In this document: piece after piece, positions 3,001 through 17,396 of the stretch
Numbering within the stretch: position 1 is the stretch's first letter
Layout of the letters: each line of letters starts with the position of its first letter
DNA from: Zygophlyctis sp. KS116
Taxonomy: Eukaryota > Fungi > Chytridiomycota
DNA length: 17,396 nucleotides
Assembly: GCA_054661495.1 (NCBI GenBank)
Contig: BAAFSQ010000210.1
Coordinates: 1 to 17,396, forward strand
Direction of reading: 5' to 3'
The notes under the pieces: model-generated
Told to the model about the DNA's origin: nothing
Seen by the model: only the letters and a program-made list of their open reading frames with translations
Database searches by the model: none
Made by a program: the position numbers and the translations under genes

Positions 3001-3610
3001 TTGGTTGGAATTCGGCATTAGCCCGACGATTGCGAGAAACGGCCAAATTTACGGAGGAATCCATTGGAAGCCTCATAGTCCTGATTTGATTACAGAAGAT
3101 GGTACCGCAATTGTAAGACGATATTTTACAAATTATTTTTAGCCGGGGGAAATCCAATTTGAAGCGCTCAAGCAGGCCCAAAGTTCATTTTACTTGTCAA
3201 TATTAATAATTCAGCTGTTCAATCTAGTGGCATGTAAAGCTCGTGATCACTTTCCTATCGGAAGATTTATATTTAGGTATTGGTAATTGATTTACAATTA
3301 GGAATGAAAAAACTTGGCTTGCCATGTTTTCTGGGACTGCATTTGGAATTTTGATTGTTTACACACCTGCAGCAAATAGTAAGAAATAATCATAATTAAA
3401 AATAGCAATTTTTCACACTTCGATGTTTTTAAATCCAGTATATTTACTAATTCCTATCAGCTTTGGAACAATATTATTGCTCTCTTCGGCATTGGATTAT
3501 TATATTCGAATTATATGTATAATTTAGATAGAAATTAAGAATTAGATTCCAAAAAGAGAAAGCTGCCCATCCAGGATCCTATTATATTATCAGAAATAGC
3601 AAAAGAATAA
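3..3610 (+). CDS. P-type ATPase, type IIC-like (Na+/K+- or H+/K+-ATPase alpha family, fungal branch); 5' end lies outside the window
   Basis: Introns 261-287, 387-410, 1057-1087, 1260-1285, 1322-1349, 1750-1774, 1910-1936, 2288-2314, 2370-2393, 3113-3142, 3277-3301, 3379-3405, 3517-3545 give one frame of 1086 codons. Motifs: SSLTGE (A domain), DKTGTLT (DKTGT at 1093-1107), KGAPE, DPPK, TGDH, GDGFNDSPALKKADIG, MILLDDNF, EGRLVFINLKKAIQY, IDLGFE. The last intron is less certain; without it the stop is TAG at 3525-3527. Confidence 0.93.
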
Positions 3611-3611
3611 A

Positions 3612-6600
3612 TCAAACTTTATCACGTCGTTTTTCAAGCAGTTGATTAAACCATCTTCTTTCAGATTCTTTACCTTCCGCACTTAATTTAGTATCCATTT
3701 CAAATAGAAGACGAAGAAGTCTCATCACACATTCTTTGTCCCGTCCACTTTGTATCCCCATTTCACATTCTCGTTTCAGACGCTGAATATCGGTTCCCAG
3801 TCGTGATAAAACTGTTTTGATATCTAAATAACGATTTGATTCCAATGCAGTCTTGTCCATCCCAATCCCCTCTCCATCGGCGTGAAAAAATTCTAATAAA
3901 AGCTTTAGCATTTGTAACACCAACGAGACTTGACGAGGATTAGGAATGTGTCGATCTTTTTCAATGGGTCCAAACATTGGTGGTATTAATAGATGTTCAA
4001 TAATTATTAGGAGATCATCCCATATCATTTTAATTGTTTCTTGAGCCATTTTAGCGGATAATCTTTCACATAGCACTTCGAAGTTTTTATTGAAATAATC
4101 CAATAGAGGTGAAATTGAGAGGGCGACATCATACTCCGATATATTTTTGTTGATTGATTCTCCTGAGAGGGTTTTATCGGAAAATTGTGCAGTGGCAGTA
4201 AATTGAGAGAAAAATGACTCAGACGGAATTGGAGCAGCTTCTTCTTTTTTGAAGGCATTCAAAATTACTTCCTTAGAAAAGGGCGATACCTAAAAATAAG
4301 ATTAATGGTATGAACCTTGGCTGCAATTATTCGCAATAAGTCTTGTCTTGTACGACGAAAGGTGCCTCTGCATTTACGGAACCAGAAATCTATATCTTCA
4401 ACTTCACCCTCATGGGTCAACCGTAAAAATATACGACCTTGTGGTGTCAAGTCCATACTGATATTATGCGTTTGATGATCAGAAAGTCTATTACGAATCG
4501 GGCTCCCAGCTTCCAGATTAATAATGCCAAGACCAATCGAGTCATCAGAAGTTAGTAAATTCTTGGAATAAACATGTATATCTAGCCTTTCAGACGGACT
4601 TACCAGTATTTCAAAAGTTTCATCCCATGTAGGATTTAATGTGTCATACACAACCCGAGTTCGTAGCAGCTCATTTTTATTCCCTAAGAAATATGCTATT
4701 GGGTAAGATGCTAGGTTGCCAGAATCTTCAGATATCTTATCGTTTTCAGGATATTGTATAATAATATATGGATTTGAAGATCCGGCGCTAGAGCTCGCTT
4801 GGATATTTTCAGCTCTTATGACTTGAAACTTAAGAGTACCCGCAAACTGAGCCGCAAAACTAGTTGGAGTACGTTGCGATATCGTTTTACCCCTGAGGGT
4901 TTCTTTGACTTTTGTTACATTCATTAATTGAGAGAGTTCGTCTAATTTTCTAAAACCGTACTCCATGTTGGATAATTTCGTACAAAACTACACCATCAAC
5001 GAAATATAACATACCGCAAGTGGAATATCTTGTGTCTTTTCTGGGACCTTACCCCCAGATATCGCTAGCTCTTTGGCTTTTGCCGACATTTCCAGAATTT
5101 CCTGCCAGCCAATGATACCAGCAGTTGTAGAAGATTGTAATTCACTTTCGAGAATAACTTGAGAGTAATGTTCCATGGCCTTGCTGATGATTTTAGCAAA
5201 AGTTTGAAGAAATTTTGCATTTTGCGTGGGATCATGCCATTTCAGGTCTGCAATAAAATCCAATTGTTGGTAGATCGCTGATATAATATCTCTTATAGAT
5301 GAAGAATGCTCAAGTTGAGATGTTCCAGATGAAAGAATAGTCTCAAATTTGTCTTCCTTAATTGCATTTCCTACCCATTCGACGGTCAATACTTCCAAAT
5401 GATTCAGCCACATTTCAATAAATGGAAGAAACCATCGCTCAATATCTACAAGGTTTTCTGTATTTGAAGAACTCTTTTTACTAATATAATGAGATAAACG
5501 ATACCATACCCTCCTCCGCATATTTGATCATATTTATTCTCTAAAGCTCTGACTTTTTCATACAGTGAAAAAACCAGCTGAGATAGATTCTTTACAGTTG
5601 ATTCCAAAACAAATGTTTGGTGCCTCGATTCAATTATTTGGCATATGTTTTTAAGATATATGTCAGTGGTGAGCCGTACAACATCAAATTCCCTATAAAT
5701 CAGATTCTAATCAAATACTTTATAAAAGGCTTCTTAAAATATTCATTATCATTTGTTATCTCATCATTGATCATATCAGTAAATTTGCATAAACCTTCAA
5801 GAACATCTTTCAAGTTGCCTTCATCAAATGGAGCTGTTAGCTCCTGGAATCGTTCAAAACGACCCACCATAGCGTCATTGACAATACCTTTCAGATGCAA
5901 CGTGAAACTAGAGCTAAACTTTGGGTGATCCGCTTTAAAAATGAGATTTTTGTAAATCAGCCTCATCAACAGAATAGTATGACTTAACGCTTCAGGAGGC
6001 TGATTCTTTGGAAAGTAATCATTATATTTCTTGAGCTGAATTTCCAAATGCGCATAAATCGAATTTAATAATGACCGAATCAATGGTTCCTTCGTTTATA
6101 AAGCAAAAACATACATCATCTTTAAGAGCCCATCTGGAGTCCTTCATTTTCTCGCGCATAAAACTGTAAGATTCCAATAGAACCTCTAAAACCAATTTAT
6201 CAGCCTTATATTCTTCAAATACTGCATTAATCAGCCCGCAGATCTGAGAGCATTCTGATAATTTCCATTTTTTATTTAAAGAGGTAACTAAAGCCTTTGA
6301 TTCAGTCGAAAGTAATTTTTCAATCGAATAATATCTTCCACCCTTACTAGAATTTGTACGGATATCCAAGTTTAACAATGATCGCAGCAAGCATTTGAAA
6401 AGAGCCCCAGAATGTAAGCCACTCGAATAAATTTTATCCTCGATATTCTGAGGGGTGCGTGGAGTTTCGATCTAGAGTAATTTAAAGTATAAAAAATACA
6501 TAATGCTCACTACATATATCAACGTACATCTCTCCACCAACATATTTGCTTTTCTGTTTTGGATGCTTTTCTAACGGATACCAGCCGGAAATGCGCCTAT

Positions 6601-7809
6601 CAGAATCTAAATAATCGAGAATTGTTGCCGCAGTTAACAACACACGTCCCAGAAAGTGGCCCTTATTATCATCCCAAAGTTCTAAATTAATCTTATCATC
6701 CAAAGTTCTTATTTTCAAATTAACATGTTGATTCCAGTAAGGATTATTATTCCCCCTGATAATGTCTGTAGAAAACGTCTCAACTGCATCTTTGTCCTTT
6801 GAGCGATCAATATTTCCAACTTGAATCTGACAAACAGGATCTCTTAAACATTTGTCTTTTGTTGTCAAGCCTCTAGCTTCGACTATTTTCACTTTCAATT
6901 TAACCGGAAGAGATCTTGATGCAGTCCGAGATGCATTTCCCCTTGAGAGTGAGATATATTTTTTCGTCAAAATCTGAACAAGGACATCTTGTAATTTCAT
7001 TCCTATAGACTGCTCCCAAAAGTAAAATCCGTCTGGACTATCAAAATCATCCGGAACTGGAGTAACATATGGATCGGCTTTTAAAGTAGTACAAACGGCA
7101 TGTACGTATCTTGAGTCGATGATCTAAAGTTTAGTAATTAAAAACCTTTACAGTCTCATCATCAATAGTCTGTAACGGAGATACTAAATCAGTTGCACTT
7201 TTTAAGGCCCTTGAGCCCTCCTCTCTTGCAGCAACTACTTCCTTCATTTCCAGCTTTTCAAAGTCTCTCTTCTTCTTCTCGGCCCTTTCCTTGTTCACCT
7301 TTATTTTGATTTGGTCCTTGAAATCATTTAGATTTTCTTACCTCTTGATGAAGAGATGGATGCGACCTTGGTGGCACAATATTTTGGGAAGGCTGTTCCC
7401 TAAATCCCGATAAATTAGGACGTGATAACTCCTGAGACTTTCCTACTGACCTACCAACGGGCATATGCTCTCTTGGAGGTATTTTATTTGGAATATCATA
7501 GTCTTTTTTAGAATAGCCTTCACTTGATCTAGTACTTTCTTGAGCTACAGCACTTTGAGTTGAAGTCTTCTTCCTTGATCTATAGCCCTCTGGCGTTTTT
7601 TCAATCATTGAATCTATATTGTCCACCAAGGAATCTAAATTAAAAGTAGAACTATTTCCTGCTCTTTTACTTGGCACATTTGCTTCAAAAGAGTCCAAAT
7701 CATTGAGCATATCATCATAGTTTATTTTTCGCTCATACATCCCAGTCTCTGGATTTCTCTTGACTCCTCTATGACGACTAAAATTATATAAACTTTATTA
7801 CTCTGTCAT
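3612..7809 (-). CDS. Unc13/Munc13-family protein (C2 - MUN/MHD1 - C2 - MHD2), about 1319 aa
   Basis: Introns 7778-7801, 7317-7341, 7124-7151, 6472-6499, 6090-6114, 5693-5718, 5481-5509, 4988-5014, 4290-4315 give 1320 codons. C2 domains [30 protein letters not shown] and [27 protein letters not shown]; MHD1-like [29 protein letters not shown]; MHD2-like [24 protein letters not shown]. The start may instead be ATG 7740. Confidence 0.85.
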
Positions 7810-12504: not shown

Positions 12505-12709
12505 TTCAATTAAAGAATGGCCACGCAAGTCGCTCAAGTCGCAATAGGAACTCTGATTTTTTTGTTTTTGATTGTATGATTAAATTGTTCAAGAGATTTA
12601 AGGGGCATGAGCTATTTAAAATCCCTGGATTAGTATAGCGATCATTTTATTCCAAATAACCCTTATTAATTGATCTAGCAAACTAGAAAGATCACGGACA
12701 CTTACGAAA

Positions 12710-13627
12710 ATGTCCGGATCGACAACTTTCCATGTATTTCCTTTTATGTGCTTAGTAATTAGGATGAAGATACCAATATTCAATGGGGAAACTCAGTCTC
12801 TCAAAATCGGACTCATGCTTATTTGCCTGCTTTTACTGCTCCTCAGGGAAAATCTGAAAGAGAAATTGCGGTAGAGGCTCGCGAAAAGGAATTGGCAATC
12901 AGAGAAAGTCATGTATTCTGTTAATATTATTAAAAATAGTTGAAAGAAAGAGAAAGAAATACAGGAACATACAATCCACCTAATTTTCCACCTTGCAGAC
13001 CGATTGTATATCATAATATTGATAAAGATATCCCGGAACAAGGAAAATGGCTGGTGAACCGCTTTTTTTTGGCTTGGAAATGTATTCCTTTTATTTATTT
13101 GTTAATTTTTAGTCGCATGTTTCACTTATATTCTTAACGTTGCTTCCTCAATTGCATTATTAACTAGCAAATCTGAACTTGCAGGAGCGAATTTTGGGAT
13201 ATCTTTGGCTTTTTTGCTTATTGGAATACCCGTTTCTTTTGCCTTTTGGTATAGATCAATATATGCGGGCGTGAAACATGACCGCAGTATTTCATTTATG
13301 CTGTTCTACTTCAACTATGGAATTCATTTAATAGCAATGGTAATTTTGGGAATAGGAATACCTGGATGGGGAGGATCTGGCTTTATATACATGATTGCAT
13401 CTTTTTCCAGAAATGAGATTGGCACAGGGGTAATGTGCCTGTTTTCATCTATAGCCTTCTCGCTTCAAGTATTGTATGGTACGTGGAATACAAGATTAGT
13501 TGTAATTTACTATCGATCAAAAGGATTATCATCAGAGCAAGCCAAAGAACAGGCTATCCATGGAATCGCTAGCAGTGGTGTCGGACAAAGATTAGCCAAG
13601 GAAGTTATAAATTCGTCCATCGCTTGA
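12710..13627 (+). CDS. Secretory carrier-associated membrane protein (SCAMP family), about 276 aa
   Basis: Introns 12734-12762, 12913-12939, 13082-13112. Coiled coil AREKELAIRESHLKERER, NFPPCRPIVYHNIDKDIP, E-peptide FWYRSIYAG, GIPGWGGSG, four hydrophobic segments. Start uncertain (possible upstream exon from ATG 12607). Confidence 0.88.
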
Positions 13628-13680
13628 TTGAAGTATAAAAGTATTAAGAAGAATTCAAAGTTATCGTAAATATTTTGAAT

Positions 13681-14256
13681 TTATAATCCCAGAGATGCAG
13701 TAACGTTTTGCTGCACCTTTCTATTAAACTTTTCTCGATCTTCTCTCCACATTTTTGAAGCATCAATGTTTGCACCACTTTCATCATTCGGCTCAGCAAG
13801 CATACTGACGACAGATAAAAGGATTTTTTCGACACTTTGGACAGGCGACCATCTCTCTGAAGCCAATTCGTACCTATTTGGATCTTCTCCAGGTGGATGT
13901 AAAATAGATATGCATACAGTCCCATCTTCATAAACGTTTGGATGAAATATCGGCGGACTGAATTTCAGCACTGGTGGAGATAATGGATAATCTTTTGGAA
14001 ATGTTATAAAGGCTCTAATTATTTAATTTAAAGAATATACGTAAAAATTCCTCCTTCGTAAGGAGTACCACTGGGTCCACTATTTTATAAGAAAAACTTA
14101 ATCATACGCAATCAATGCTTCCCAAAGGAAAAAGTTTGATTCATTGACTGGGCCAACCTCAATTCCCTCTGGAGCTGAAGTCACAAGCTCTAAAAAGTAA
14201 AAATGATTGTAAATACCTTTGTACTCTGTCATCAAACGCTTCAATGCAGTGGACAT
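13681..14256 (-). CDS. UBC7: Ubiquitin-conjugating enzyme E2, Ubc7/UBE2G2, 164 aa
   Basis: Introns 14190-14216, 14080-14107, 14015-14040. [51 protein letters not shown] with the Ubc7-type acidic insert [28 protein letters not shown]. Confidence 0.96.
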
Positions 14257-14276
14257 TCTTTATTTTATATTGAAAC

Positions 14277-14743
14277 CTAAAACCTCCTTTTTTGAACATT
14301 CCACATCTTGCGTAAACCAGGAAATCTGAGAAATGCAGTCCCTACAGCCAAAAGTGAAATATTGGCTGCTGTACATATCTATTTTTAAAAAAAATTAAAT
14401 TTCTACCAAATATGGTGTCTGAAAGCTTGTCTTGACTGTTTTGTGACGGAAAGTTTGCATCGCTTACATATTATGCCTAGAATGTAAATTACCCCAGAGT
14501 CCTCCGATCCATCCACCCATTAGAGCGGTTAACTGAAGTTGTTTCTCTGGAATTCTCCAGCCCTTGGAAAGTGCCATTTGTTTATCATACCTTTTATGAG
14601 ATGATTTATACAAACCAAAACAGACCCACCGATGCAGCATTAATTAGGCAAAAATACCCGGCAATATATGGAAAGGCATTTGAGAGATTGGATAAATCCG
14701 CCAAAGTCAATGATTTATAAAGGCGATTAAAAATTCTATTCAT
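14277..14743 (-). CDS. DUF1294 (YsdA-like) membrane protein, about 127 aa
   Basis: Introns 14591-14615, 14463-14492, 14379-14406. Spliced product contains FWYDKQMALSKGWRIPEKQLQLTALMGGWIGGLWAMQTFRHKTVK, the DKxxA..WRIPE..GG..G..AM..FRHKT signature. Mostly missing from the ORF track; start codon uncertain. Confidence 0.88.
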
Positions 14744-15245
14744 TTTCAAGATTGATTTCATTTCCATTCTCATCGTAATTTTGTATTCCTTCATCGTCTT
14801 CCTCTTCAGGATCATAACTTTTGAGTAAAGCTTGAACAACATCTAAATGTGATTGCTGTTCAGCTAGAGTAACAGGACTCCGTCCTGATGCATTCCTAAT
14901 TGTTGCATCTGCTCCAGCTTCAAGAAGTTTCTCAACAATGTTAAAGTGACCATTTAATGCAGCCCAATGCAGAGGGGTACTACCCTCTTCAGTCATTGCA
15001 TTAATATCCTTTGGAGTCAAATATTTGACCAAGAATTCGACAATATTTAAATGTCCATTTGCAGCTGATAGATGTAAAGCTGATTGAGATTGAGAGTTTC
15101 TTGTTTTGATTAAAGATATCATCTCTTGGGCAGGAATTGTAGAAAGATCTGAAACTTGTAAAGTTTTACACATTATATTAATCATTTCATCCAATTCTCC
15201 ATATCTGGAACAAGCAACAAATTCTTCGGGATCCCAAGTGGTCAT
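14736..15245 (-). CDS. Ankyrin-repeat protein, Yar1-like, 169 aa, intronless
   Basis: SALHLSAANGHLNIVEFL, TPLHWAALNGHFNIVEKLLEAGAD, N-terminal SRYGELDE and acidic tail DPEEEDDE. The ankyrin call is firm; Yar1 orthology is inferred. Confidence 0.85.
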   Translation of the reverse strand: MTTWDPEEFVACSRYGELDEMINIMCKTLQVSDLSTIPAQEMISLIKTRNSQSQSALHLSAANGHLNIVEFLVKYLTPKDINAMTEEGSTPLHWAALNGHFNIVEKLLEAGADATIRNASGRSPVTLAEQQSHLDVVQALLKSYDPEEEDDEGIQNYDENGNEINLENE

Positions 15246-15259
15246 GATAAGATGGCAAT

Positions 15260-16541
15260 TCAATAATTTTTAGTAAAATTTTTCACAGTGATTTCATCAT
15301 AAATGATTTTCATTGTTGATTTTGAAAAATGAGAGGTACAGTCAATTAGTAAACATGATGCCGAAGCAGCTGCAAGGCCATATCTAAATGAGGTAATTGC
15401 ATCCTGTGTGTCTAAATACTCTAGAAAGAAGATCCCTGAACAAGTATCACCAGCGCCCAAGGGGTTGAGCATCGGGTATGCTGTTTTGCTTGGATATTTT
15501 TCTCCAGAAATTGTTGAGTAAGAGGGATTTCCTACTGCTTCTGGCAAAGATTTTGATAATGAGCTAGAGTCATCTCTAATCATATCCAGAGAGTCTTCTC
15601 TGATTAAATCCGATAGATTAGGCAGTTCATATGTAGATACATGTATGTTTAAGTCTTTTGAGTTTCTTTGCAGCAACACCGCCCTAGAGGTTAAATAATT
15701 TAAAATACGTATTGGGCCCACTTGTAATAGCGACTATTTTGACTTGAAATTGTTTAAGTATTTCTTCTCCTACTTGAACCAAATCAGTTACGAAACTATA
15801 TATTTGAATAAACGTAACATACCCTAAATTTGCAATCGAAATAGCTTCTTCAGAGTTAATTTTTAGTATATCAACAAGCCCTGTTTTCATAACATCAAGA
15901 TCTCTACAGGCATCAAGAAAGACAACTGTGGATGGTGTCTTATTTTGGATGATAGTCGAAAATGTGCTTCCAGTAACTCCTCCGGGTAACGATCCGCATA
16001 ATGCTATTCCCTCCAATCTTGGAGATTGGATTAGCTGCTGAGAAATTTTTTCAAGAGCATCCTTTTCTTCCAGTGATATTTTCCCCGGGGGCTCCTAAAT
16101 ACAATAAATACAAAACCCAATTTACAATGAGCTCGGTCATTTCACCAGTTTTCCCATCCAAAAGAGTTGTACATTGCCTAGTTGGTTTATCGACAGATAC
16201 TGTCATATTAAAAAAACTGACTACCGGTAACTTGATGAATTCCTTTCTCGCAGAGATAATCCTGAACGTACCCACCTGTTCTTCCTCCAATGAATTGCAA
16301 AATAGTGATCTTATCAGCTTCTCCATACTGCTCACATGCAATAGCAAAGTTTTGTCCTAATTAATATTATTTCGTACAACTTACCTTTTCCTCCAATGCT
16401 ATGAGCCTTACGATATGCTCTGTTAACCTGTCCAGGATTAAACGCCTGGAAATGAAGTGTGGTTTGAAAGGCAGGATTAAGGCCTTTTAAATAAGGATTA
16501 AATACGAATATACCAACTACTAAGATTTCTCTGCAGTCCAT
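15260..16541 (-). CDS. PfkB/ribokinase-family sugar kinase, FruK/LacC/Pfk-2-like, about 371 aa
   Basis: Introns 16484-16513, 16357-16384, 16200-16224, 16095-16125, 15796-15822, 15684-15708. GLNPAFQ..GQVNR..GGKGQNFA, TRQCTT..TELIEP, CGSLPGG, LKINSEEA, NPLGAGDT, GLAAASASC. Confidence 0.9.
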
Positions 16542-16607
16542 GTAACCACAGACCCTGACCGCCGCCGATTGACCAAATGCATTTGGGAATTAGGAAATAC
16601 AGCATGA

Positions 16608-17160
16608 TTAATACTTGGATGATGTTTTCTCAATCGGAAACTGCTTATGAAGCTAAAGACAAAATTCCCAGGAAAACTGAAACACTCTGGATTCTCCAAT
16701 GGCGGTGTCTAGCTGGCGAAATCACTGAATATCTATCATTGACTTAAACAAGCTTCCAAAGTATGCATTGGATATTTGTACTTAATTCTACAGGACAAAA
16801 ACAAAAGAATATTGGTTGAAGATGGGCTTAAACTTTTTCCAACAGGAGGAACAAACTTTTTCAGCACTTTCTGTGCTAGAATGGCCGGAAAATCTGTATG
16901 CGATGCCATAAATTATGTCAGCGGAGTCATTTTCTCTTAATATTTAGGTGGTTGAATTGGACAAAAATATGAGGAACAGAGGATTTTCTCAGTTTATCAA
17001 TCTTTTCAAAAAATTTAGAAGAGGATTATACAGTAAGAGTGAAATAAAATACTTCAATGAAGTATGTCCTTCTGTAAGTCTTATCACATATACAAAAGAA
17101 TATTATCCTTTTATAACGACTTCAAACATCGAAAAATAGCTTATGAATAAAGATTGTGTA
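16608..17160 (+). pseudogene. Possible decayed Pif1-like (SF1B) helicase fragment
   Basis: Across frameshifts and stops, in the expected order: LIL/DDVFSIG (motif II-like), IIDLNKLP (motif III-like, weak), GLKLF, VVELDKNMR..FINLFKKFRRG..EIKYFN, ITTSNIEK*LMN. No intact spliced model found. Confidence 0.4.
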
Positions 17161-17348
17161 AATGACTATGGCTTCAAAATATAAGAATCATCTAAGAACT
17201 TCCGTGATTTATCTACTGGCGGAATATACATGATGAAACTCAGGTATTGAGATTCTGATGATATAACTGTACGTTGAAAATCTTCTGATCGCTTCGAATG
17301 ATAAGAATGCCTTGGCTTCTCAAAATTCCTTTGGTTTGGGAGGTACTT

Positions 17349-17388
17349 GAACGAGAGATCTACCAATTAATCCAGAACGAGAGATCTA
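17349..17388. repeat. 14-bp perfect direct repeat GAACGAGAGATCTA x2
   Basis: Copies at 17349-17362 and 17375-17388 with a 12-nt spacer. Confidence 0.85.
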
Positions 17389-17396
17389 GCAATAAA

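Follow-up and report, generated by a model that had tools for sequence, protein, structure and literature searches.

How are four genes expressed when almost no DNA separates them? On the minus strand of the window (the whole 17,396-nt stretch of DNA that was analyzed), a PfkB-like gene, an ankyrin-repeat gene (Ank), a DUF1294 gene and a UBC7 gene follow one another in that order between positions 13681 and 16541. The TGA stop codon of the PfkB-like gene ends at 15260 and the Ank ATG lies at 15245, leaving a 14-nt spacer (15246–15259). The ATG of the DUF1294 gene (14743) starts 8 nt within the Ank coding sequence, whose TAG occupies 14738–14736, and the DUF1294 TAG ends at 14277, 20 nt before the UBC7 ATG at 14256. 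A preliminary description of this locus had reported these same three distances, which proved exact, and the run consists of four real genes encoding 371, 169, 127 and 164 amino acids, respectively. It had gone on to suggest either polycistronic messages or regulatory signals buried in neighboring coding sequence.

All four curated spliced models are free of internal stops, and their twelve GT-AG introns measure 25–31 nt. The PfkB-family sugar-kinase-like gene (15260–16541) comprises seven exons and six introns of 25–31 nt, which alignment with three relatives confirmed. In the window, its first intron (16484–16513) is 30 nt long, keeps the frame and contains no stop codon; its length of 29 nt in the related locus L005 confirms it as an intron. 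When single exons were searched, the family assignment received a weak Pfam PF00294 match (E 0.0014), with the last exon scoring 18.5 bits against a cut-off of 25.8; a GAGDT motif is visible in the protein. Ank (14736–15245) is a single exon matching Pfam Ank_2 (E 1e-31), and the UBC7/UBE2G2 ubiquitin-conjugating enzyme gene (13681–14256; four exons; UQ_con, E 2e-25) clusters with proteins named UBE2G2. The start of the DUF1294 gene (14277–14743; four exons; Pfam DUF1294, E 7e-13 and also 8e-11) is the least obvious of the four. Two lines of evidence support position 14743: six loci keep the N-terminal sequence MN(R/S)IFN, and frame 0 contains no stops and 31 synonymous changes, whereas the other frames contain 3–6 stops per lineage. 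An alternative start at 14640 was rejected, being missing from locus L007 and outside the conserved frame. Judged by eye, the DUF1294 N-terminus resembles a mitochondrial presequence. The functions of the four genes are unrelated. A convergent SCAMP gene on the plus strand (12710–13627; Pfam SCAMP, E 1e-24) closes the same-strand run, and an Rfam search of the window gave no match.

The assembly spans 12.7 Mb in 1175 contigs, and metagenome contigs match it at >99.8%. The closest named relatives of Ank come from chytrids, with Rhizophlyctis rosea first at 50–54%; the organism appears to be chytrid-like, and we claim no finer placement. A search for rRNA found bacterial-type genes only, SSU and LSU, at positions 1–2381 of L034 (G000:C172), a contig of more than 21 kb that is probably the mitochondrial genome; nuclear 18S was not found in this search.

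Related loci reveal how old the arrangement is and which of its distances are fixed. The order PfkB, Ank, DUF1294, UBC7 and convergent SCAMP is kept in L004, L005/L006, L007 and L030, with an Ank identity to the window of 97% in L004 and 70% in L030, and L031, at 56–62%, keeps the order of the first three genes. The gap between PfkB and Ank measures 14, 14, 23, 20, 21 and 23 nt in six loci and that between DUF1294 and UBC7 measures 20, 39, 27, 28 and 27 nt in five. While these gaps drift, the Ank/DUF1294 distance is −8 nt in all six loci (five independent lineages), down to 56–62% Ank identity. More distant loci are looser. In L116 (49%), the order is kept with 74 nt between PfkB and Ank and ~118 nt between Ank and DUF1294, the latter measured to the first in-frame methionine, so that an upstream exon is possible; ATGs occur within both spacers. 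In L115 (52%), the Ank/DUF1294 distance is +13 nt, DUF1294 and UBC7 apparently overlap by 14 nt and PfkB is not upstream. R. rosea shows no synteny, with spacers of kilobases and different neighbors, and a search of JGI metagenomes for related loci returned distant ankyrins only (best segments 27–54%). The gene order is therefore older than the tight packing, and each junction varies in spacing on its own. The convergent UBC7/SCAMP gap (13628–13680) is 53 nt in the window versus 6–9 nt in three relatives.

We next considered how unusual such distances are in this genome, using a sample of 217 kb (1.7% of the genome), made up of the window and 200 kb drawn from five contigs, in which genes were called with a purpose-written ab initio spliced predictor that recovered most window genes. 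Its strict setting fused some tight pairs, including DUF1294 and UBC7, and tight tandem counts are therefore a floor. An excess of same-strand runs, which the preliminary description had suggested looking for, is not present in the sample: 67 of 124 neighbors (54%) share a strand (p=0.42), as do 79 of 136 in a looser gene set (p=0.07). Near-zero spacers occur in every orientation. Median gaps are 22 nt for convergent, 81 nt for tandem and 184 nt for divergent pairs (Kruskal p=6e-8), the order predicted by separate upstream promoters. Among convergent gaps, 18 of 29 are ≤30 nt and five pairs overlap; 3′ ends thus routinely enter neighboring genes where a shared coding message is impossible. Eight of 28 divergent gaps measure 33–53 nt, and three of these eight pairs have a Pfam domain starting 1–7 residues from at least one ATG. 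The ATGs of a gene for an SPT small subunit and a kinase gene lie 44 nt apart with Pfam domains anchoring both N-termini, so two promoters and two 5′ UTRs must fit in or around 44 nt. Other head-to-head ATG distances are 37 nt (Tom22/AAA) and 35 nt (flavoprotein/Voldacs). Head-to-head genes 35–44 nt apart cannot share an mRNA. The contention that UTRs and promoters cannot fit between the four genes is thus true of the intergenic DNA, but the lack of room is a genome-wide trait that extends to convergent and divergent pairs, and the step from lack of room to an operon fails. Tandem gaps ≤30 nt make up 21% of the total within a continuous distribution that has no distinct short class, and ~10 runs of three such gaps would be expected per genome, assuming ~7000 genes; the four-gene run exceeds chance only modestly within this genome. 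Pointing the other way, tandem gaps ≤14 nt are more frequent (16%) than the 1–7% expected when convergent and divergent gaps are combined in an additive null.

We consider it likely that the run reflects extreme genome shrinkage, with overlapping, separately initiated transcripts whose start and stop signals would be hidden in neighboring genes. Spacers would have eroded genome-wide until core promoters lay ~30 nt or less from the ATG, leaving very short 5′ UTRs, and the 3′ UTR of a gene and its poly(A) site would extend into the coding sequence of the neighbor. Under this model, transcription of Ank would begin from the AAAATT element near the PfkB stop codon, that of UBC7 from a TAGG(G/T) element near the stop codon of DUF1294 and that of DUF1294 from a site within the last Ank codons. 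Read-through RNAs spanning several genes probably exist, and only their first open reading frame (ORF) would be translated. Of the explanations offered in the preliminary description, this corresponds to the one that places promoters and terminators within neighboring coding sequence, here also directly against it. It is favored by the order of the gaps, the head-to-head spacing and, more tentatively, the words that precede Ank and UBC7.

Several words are enriched before the ATGs of well-spaced genes in the sampled contigs, namely ACGCG, TCCGA/CGGAA, ACCTA/GCCCTA and AAAATT/AAATTT. The AAAATT word peaks at −30 to −11 of ordinary genes (18 of 84, versus 5–7 of 84 farther upstream). GC-containing words are enriched in divergent and tandem gaps and absent from 1088 nt of convergent gaps, and the TAGG(G/T) family, likewise missing from convergent gaps, occurs 2.2–2.4 times per kb in gaps between divergent or tandem genes. 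These distributions mark the words as candidate promoter elements. The ACGCG/CGCGA, CGGA and TAGGG-like words found upstream of genes in L010–L029 presumably resemble the sites of cell-cycle, zinc-cluster and telomere-repeat factors. Promoter words are also concentrated in the coding ends before tight tandem neighbors, a pattern that is suggestive: the last 80 coding nt contain 1.09 words per tight-tandem upstream gene versus 0.27 (permutation p=0.008, n=11, window left out), with sample-wide p=0.008–0.016 for the top five words and p=0.07–0.57 in the looser gene set. Nothing resembling CCC/GGG was conspicuous ahead of ATGs, a sigma-70 scan remained at chance level and no poly(A) hexamer was clearly recognizable; AATAAA peaks weakly across the stop codon, in 9 of 101 genes.

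Two of the three junctions carry such words. In all six loci, the Ank ATG is preceded at −21 to −25 by an AAAATT word, even though the PfkB stop codon has slid past it in the window, where this candidate core-promoter element (15265–15270, minus strand) sits at −25 within the final PfkB codons. Similarly, each of the five loci compared has a TAGG(G/T) word between −21 and −42 relative to the UBC7 ATG. In the window, it is found at −23 within the segment formed by the DUF1294 stop codon and the 20-nt spacer (14257–14279, minus strand); in L005, it is not the stop codon, and L004 has a second copy within a 19-nt insertion. Because these words overlap a stop codon in several loci, their weight is lowered. 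Upstream of DUF1294, none of the six loci has a promoter word within 100 nt. Ahead of PfkB, a GC-rich stretch of 25 nt (16543–16567, minus strand) is all that the window shares with the 97%-identical L004 before the two become unrelated, which fits a very short PfkB promoter, and this stretch is a candidate for the whole of it. Beyond it, positions 16568–17396 of the window contain plus-strand fragments that look helicase-like by eye and have no Pfam match, and the unrelated positions 1–1770 of L004 have a Pif1 match (E 0.006) and a match to retrotransposon gag (E 0.02), both weak; the region upstream of PfkB is likely a mobile-element insertion site.

The short same-strand spacers recall those of tunicate operons and could point to a polycistronic pre-mRNA resolved by spliced-leader trans-splicing, and both the window and L004 have an AAG directly ahead of the UBC7 ATG. 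This mechanism is contradicted at PfkB/Ank by the lack of a 3′ splice acceptor, as AG is absent from the spacer in six of six loci, the 14 nt of the window included, and L007 has none between the DUF1294 stop codon and the UBC7 ATG. The missing same-strand excess also speaks against it, and spliced-leader trans-splicing is not known in fungi. A search for SL1 RNA (RF00198) was blank and, having no positive control, is uninformative. We regard trans-splicing as highly improbable here.

Equally remote is decoding of the four genes as one polycistronic unit by leaky scanning, in the manner of green algae. Algal bicistrons do show short spacers and overlapping stop and start codons (10.1101/2024.07.24.605010), and PfkB and Ank both have a pyrimidine at −3. 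Leaky scanning, however, needs an AUG-poor upstream ORF, and in algae a single extra AUG lowered output of the second ORF by over half or to background (10.1101/2024.07.24.605010). The upstream ORFs here contain 21 (PfkB, 1116 nt), 18 (Ank, 510 nt) and 10 (DUF1294, 384 nt) internal ATGs, at or above random expectation, which contradicts the mechanism and makes it very unlikely. Upstream genes of tight tandem pairs are no shorter as a class and no poorer in ATGs (23.7 versus 23.1 per kb). Neither the short, AUG-poor upstream ORF nor the spacing far below that of other colinear genes that mark the algal cases was found, short gaps being common among tandem pairs at large. Short or overlapping inter-ORF spacing and conserved colinearity are shared with the polycistronic genes of green algae (PMC7896298; 10.1101/2024.07.24.605010), whereas the ATG-rich upstream ORFs and the genome-wide extent of the short spacing are not.

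The neighbors could instead be partly fused, with an intron, a frameshift or read-through joining Ank to DUF1294 or DUF1294 to UBC7. In the window, removal of a 26-nt GT-AG stretch (14258–14283), which ranks at the 5th percentile of intron scores, would fuse DUF1294 and UBC7 in frame. Shifting by +1 at the Ank TAG would lead into the DUF1294 frame. However, relatives have only non-homologous candidates for a fusion intron, below the 1st percentile; chance fusion introns are possible at 5 of 15 other tight junctions; and Ank/DUF1294 and PfkB/Ank lack a usable intron. Each gene also has its own conserved ATG, and read-through of the Ank TAG would meet a backup TAA after three codons. Fusion thus seems quite improbable as a general explanation, and a minor DUF1294–UBC7 fusion product made from read-through RNA is possible in this strain only.

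The Ank/DUF1294 junction is the strongest case for a shared message. Here, Ank and DUF1294 (and perhaps other pairs) would lie on one mRNA, and a ribosome that terminates at the Ank TAG would restart 8 nt back. In addition to the constancy of the overlap, a 23-nt stretch around it (14725–14747, minus strand) is invariant in four lineages and is the longest of the region, the runner-up in 2.9 kb being 11 nt; its 15-nt core has no second copy in the genome. The lack of a promoter word before DUF1294 and the excess of very short tandem gaps, three of them at −1, point the same way. In yeast, 80S ribosomes can reinitiate on a bicistronic mRNA independently of cis-elements and do so better with short spacers, which provides a possible route for this overlap, although reinitiation was seen only in a selected strain and such transcripts are not normally translated in yeast (PMC11952965).

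Against this, a start within the upstream coding sequence is locked in place by dual coding of the eight bases, and the acidic Ank tail provides ATGs in the DUF1294 frame. The AT-ending codons here show 36–70% synonymous invariance anyway, so that the invariance past the stop codon is only mildly unusual (~0.08), and the rest of the stretch tracks conserved residues with strongly biased codons. Constraint on it could also come from the backup stop or from a poly(A) site. Viral TURBS-type reinitiation likewise involves a stop/start overlap, which is present here (−8 nt), but neither its UGGGA motif nor a conserved RNA structure was found: the word TGGGA is absent from the 110 nt upstream, and predicted folds are weak and dissimilar in five loci. 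The outgroup distances of +13 and ~+118 nt depart from the overlap, and the Ank and DUF1294 proteins have no functional link. Reinitiation is therefore compatible with the invariant −8 nt and the missing promoter word at Ank/DUF1294 and unsupported at PfkB/Ank and DUF1294/UBC7, and we consider it unlikely overall, though less so than the other shared-message routes. The stronger proposal, that some tight tandem pairs of this chytrid-like clade, Ank/DUF1294 being the best example, form obligately bicistronic nuclear mRNAs in which natural termination–reinitiation gives access to the second ORF after a full-length, AUG-rich first ORF, is a shade more doubtful still. If true, it would be a rare native nuclear case in fungi of a mechanism otherwise seen in viruses and selected yeast strains. 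Separate initiation has its own constraint at this junction: because Ank ATGs lie 18–27 nt ahead of the DUF1294 start, a separate DUF1294 start site must sit very close to it or yield an N-terminal extension.

Separately initiated, overlapping transcripts have precedents. The microsporidia Encephalitozoon cuniculi and Antonospora locustae show overlapping, multigene transcription, and E. cuniculi has 5′ UTRs of <7 nt and an AAATTT-like signal before the ATG (PMC2803860). Our locus and sample share with them near-zero spacers, a distance of ~35 bp between head-to-head genes, an AAATTT-like word that closely precedes the ATG and, as predicted from DNA sequence, read-through RNAs with a separate start for each gene. 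They differ in belonging to a 12.7-Mb chytrid-like genome rich in 23–31-nt introns and in having no prominent CCC/GGG-like word. Read-through polycistrons of Agaricomycetes also join unrelated tandem genes whose order is kept among relatives, and genes that share an RNA there are transcribed on their own as well; with 364 nt as the mean inter-ORF distance in those polycistrons, promoters fit between the genes, whereas here they must overlap coding sequence (PMC4503453). The locus had been put forward as a candidate for an undescribed expression system, a suggestion that finds no support, given the prior description of overlapping units with very short 5′ UTRs in microsporidia (PMC2803860). Separate initiation would instead add a chytrid-like lineage, rich in introns, to the cases of overlapping transcription of the microsporidian type, which is of specialist value rather than a new system. 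The Ank/DUF1294 junction would also provide a graded natural series (118, 13 and −8 nt) for studying how a promoter moves into coding sequence.

Other compact junctions appeared alongside these. One-base stop/start overlaps are predicted at three of the 67 tandem pairs (L022:4411, TAATG; L026:6422, TGATG; L029:1238, TAATG), at starts that have no Pfam anchor. In the L005 UBC7 gene (3042–3584), the intron corresponding to the second of the window (14107–14080) is precisely missing, and the two remaining introns are in frame and stop-free. The tandem gap between a mitochondrial carrier gene and SCAMP (12505–12709) measures 205–211 nt in the window and L004 and 4, 3 and −17 nt in three relatives; tight tandem gaps can thus expand too. 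Elsewhere in the window, the predicted stop codons of a P-type ATPase gene and a convergent Unc13-like gene lie 1 nt apart (3610–3612), and the stop codon end of a prenyltransferase gene shares 26 nt (7784–7809) with the micro-exon predicted to open the Unc13-like gene, a junction that in L005 is an ATGA overlap.
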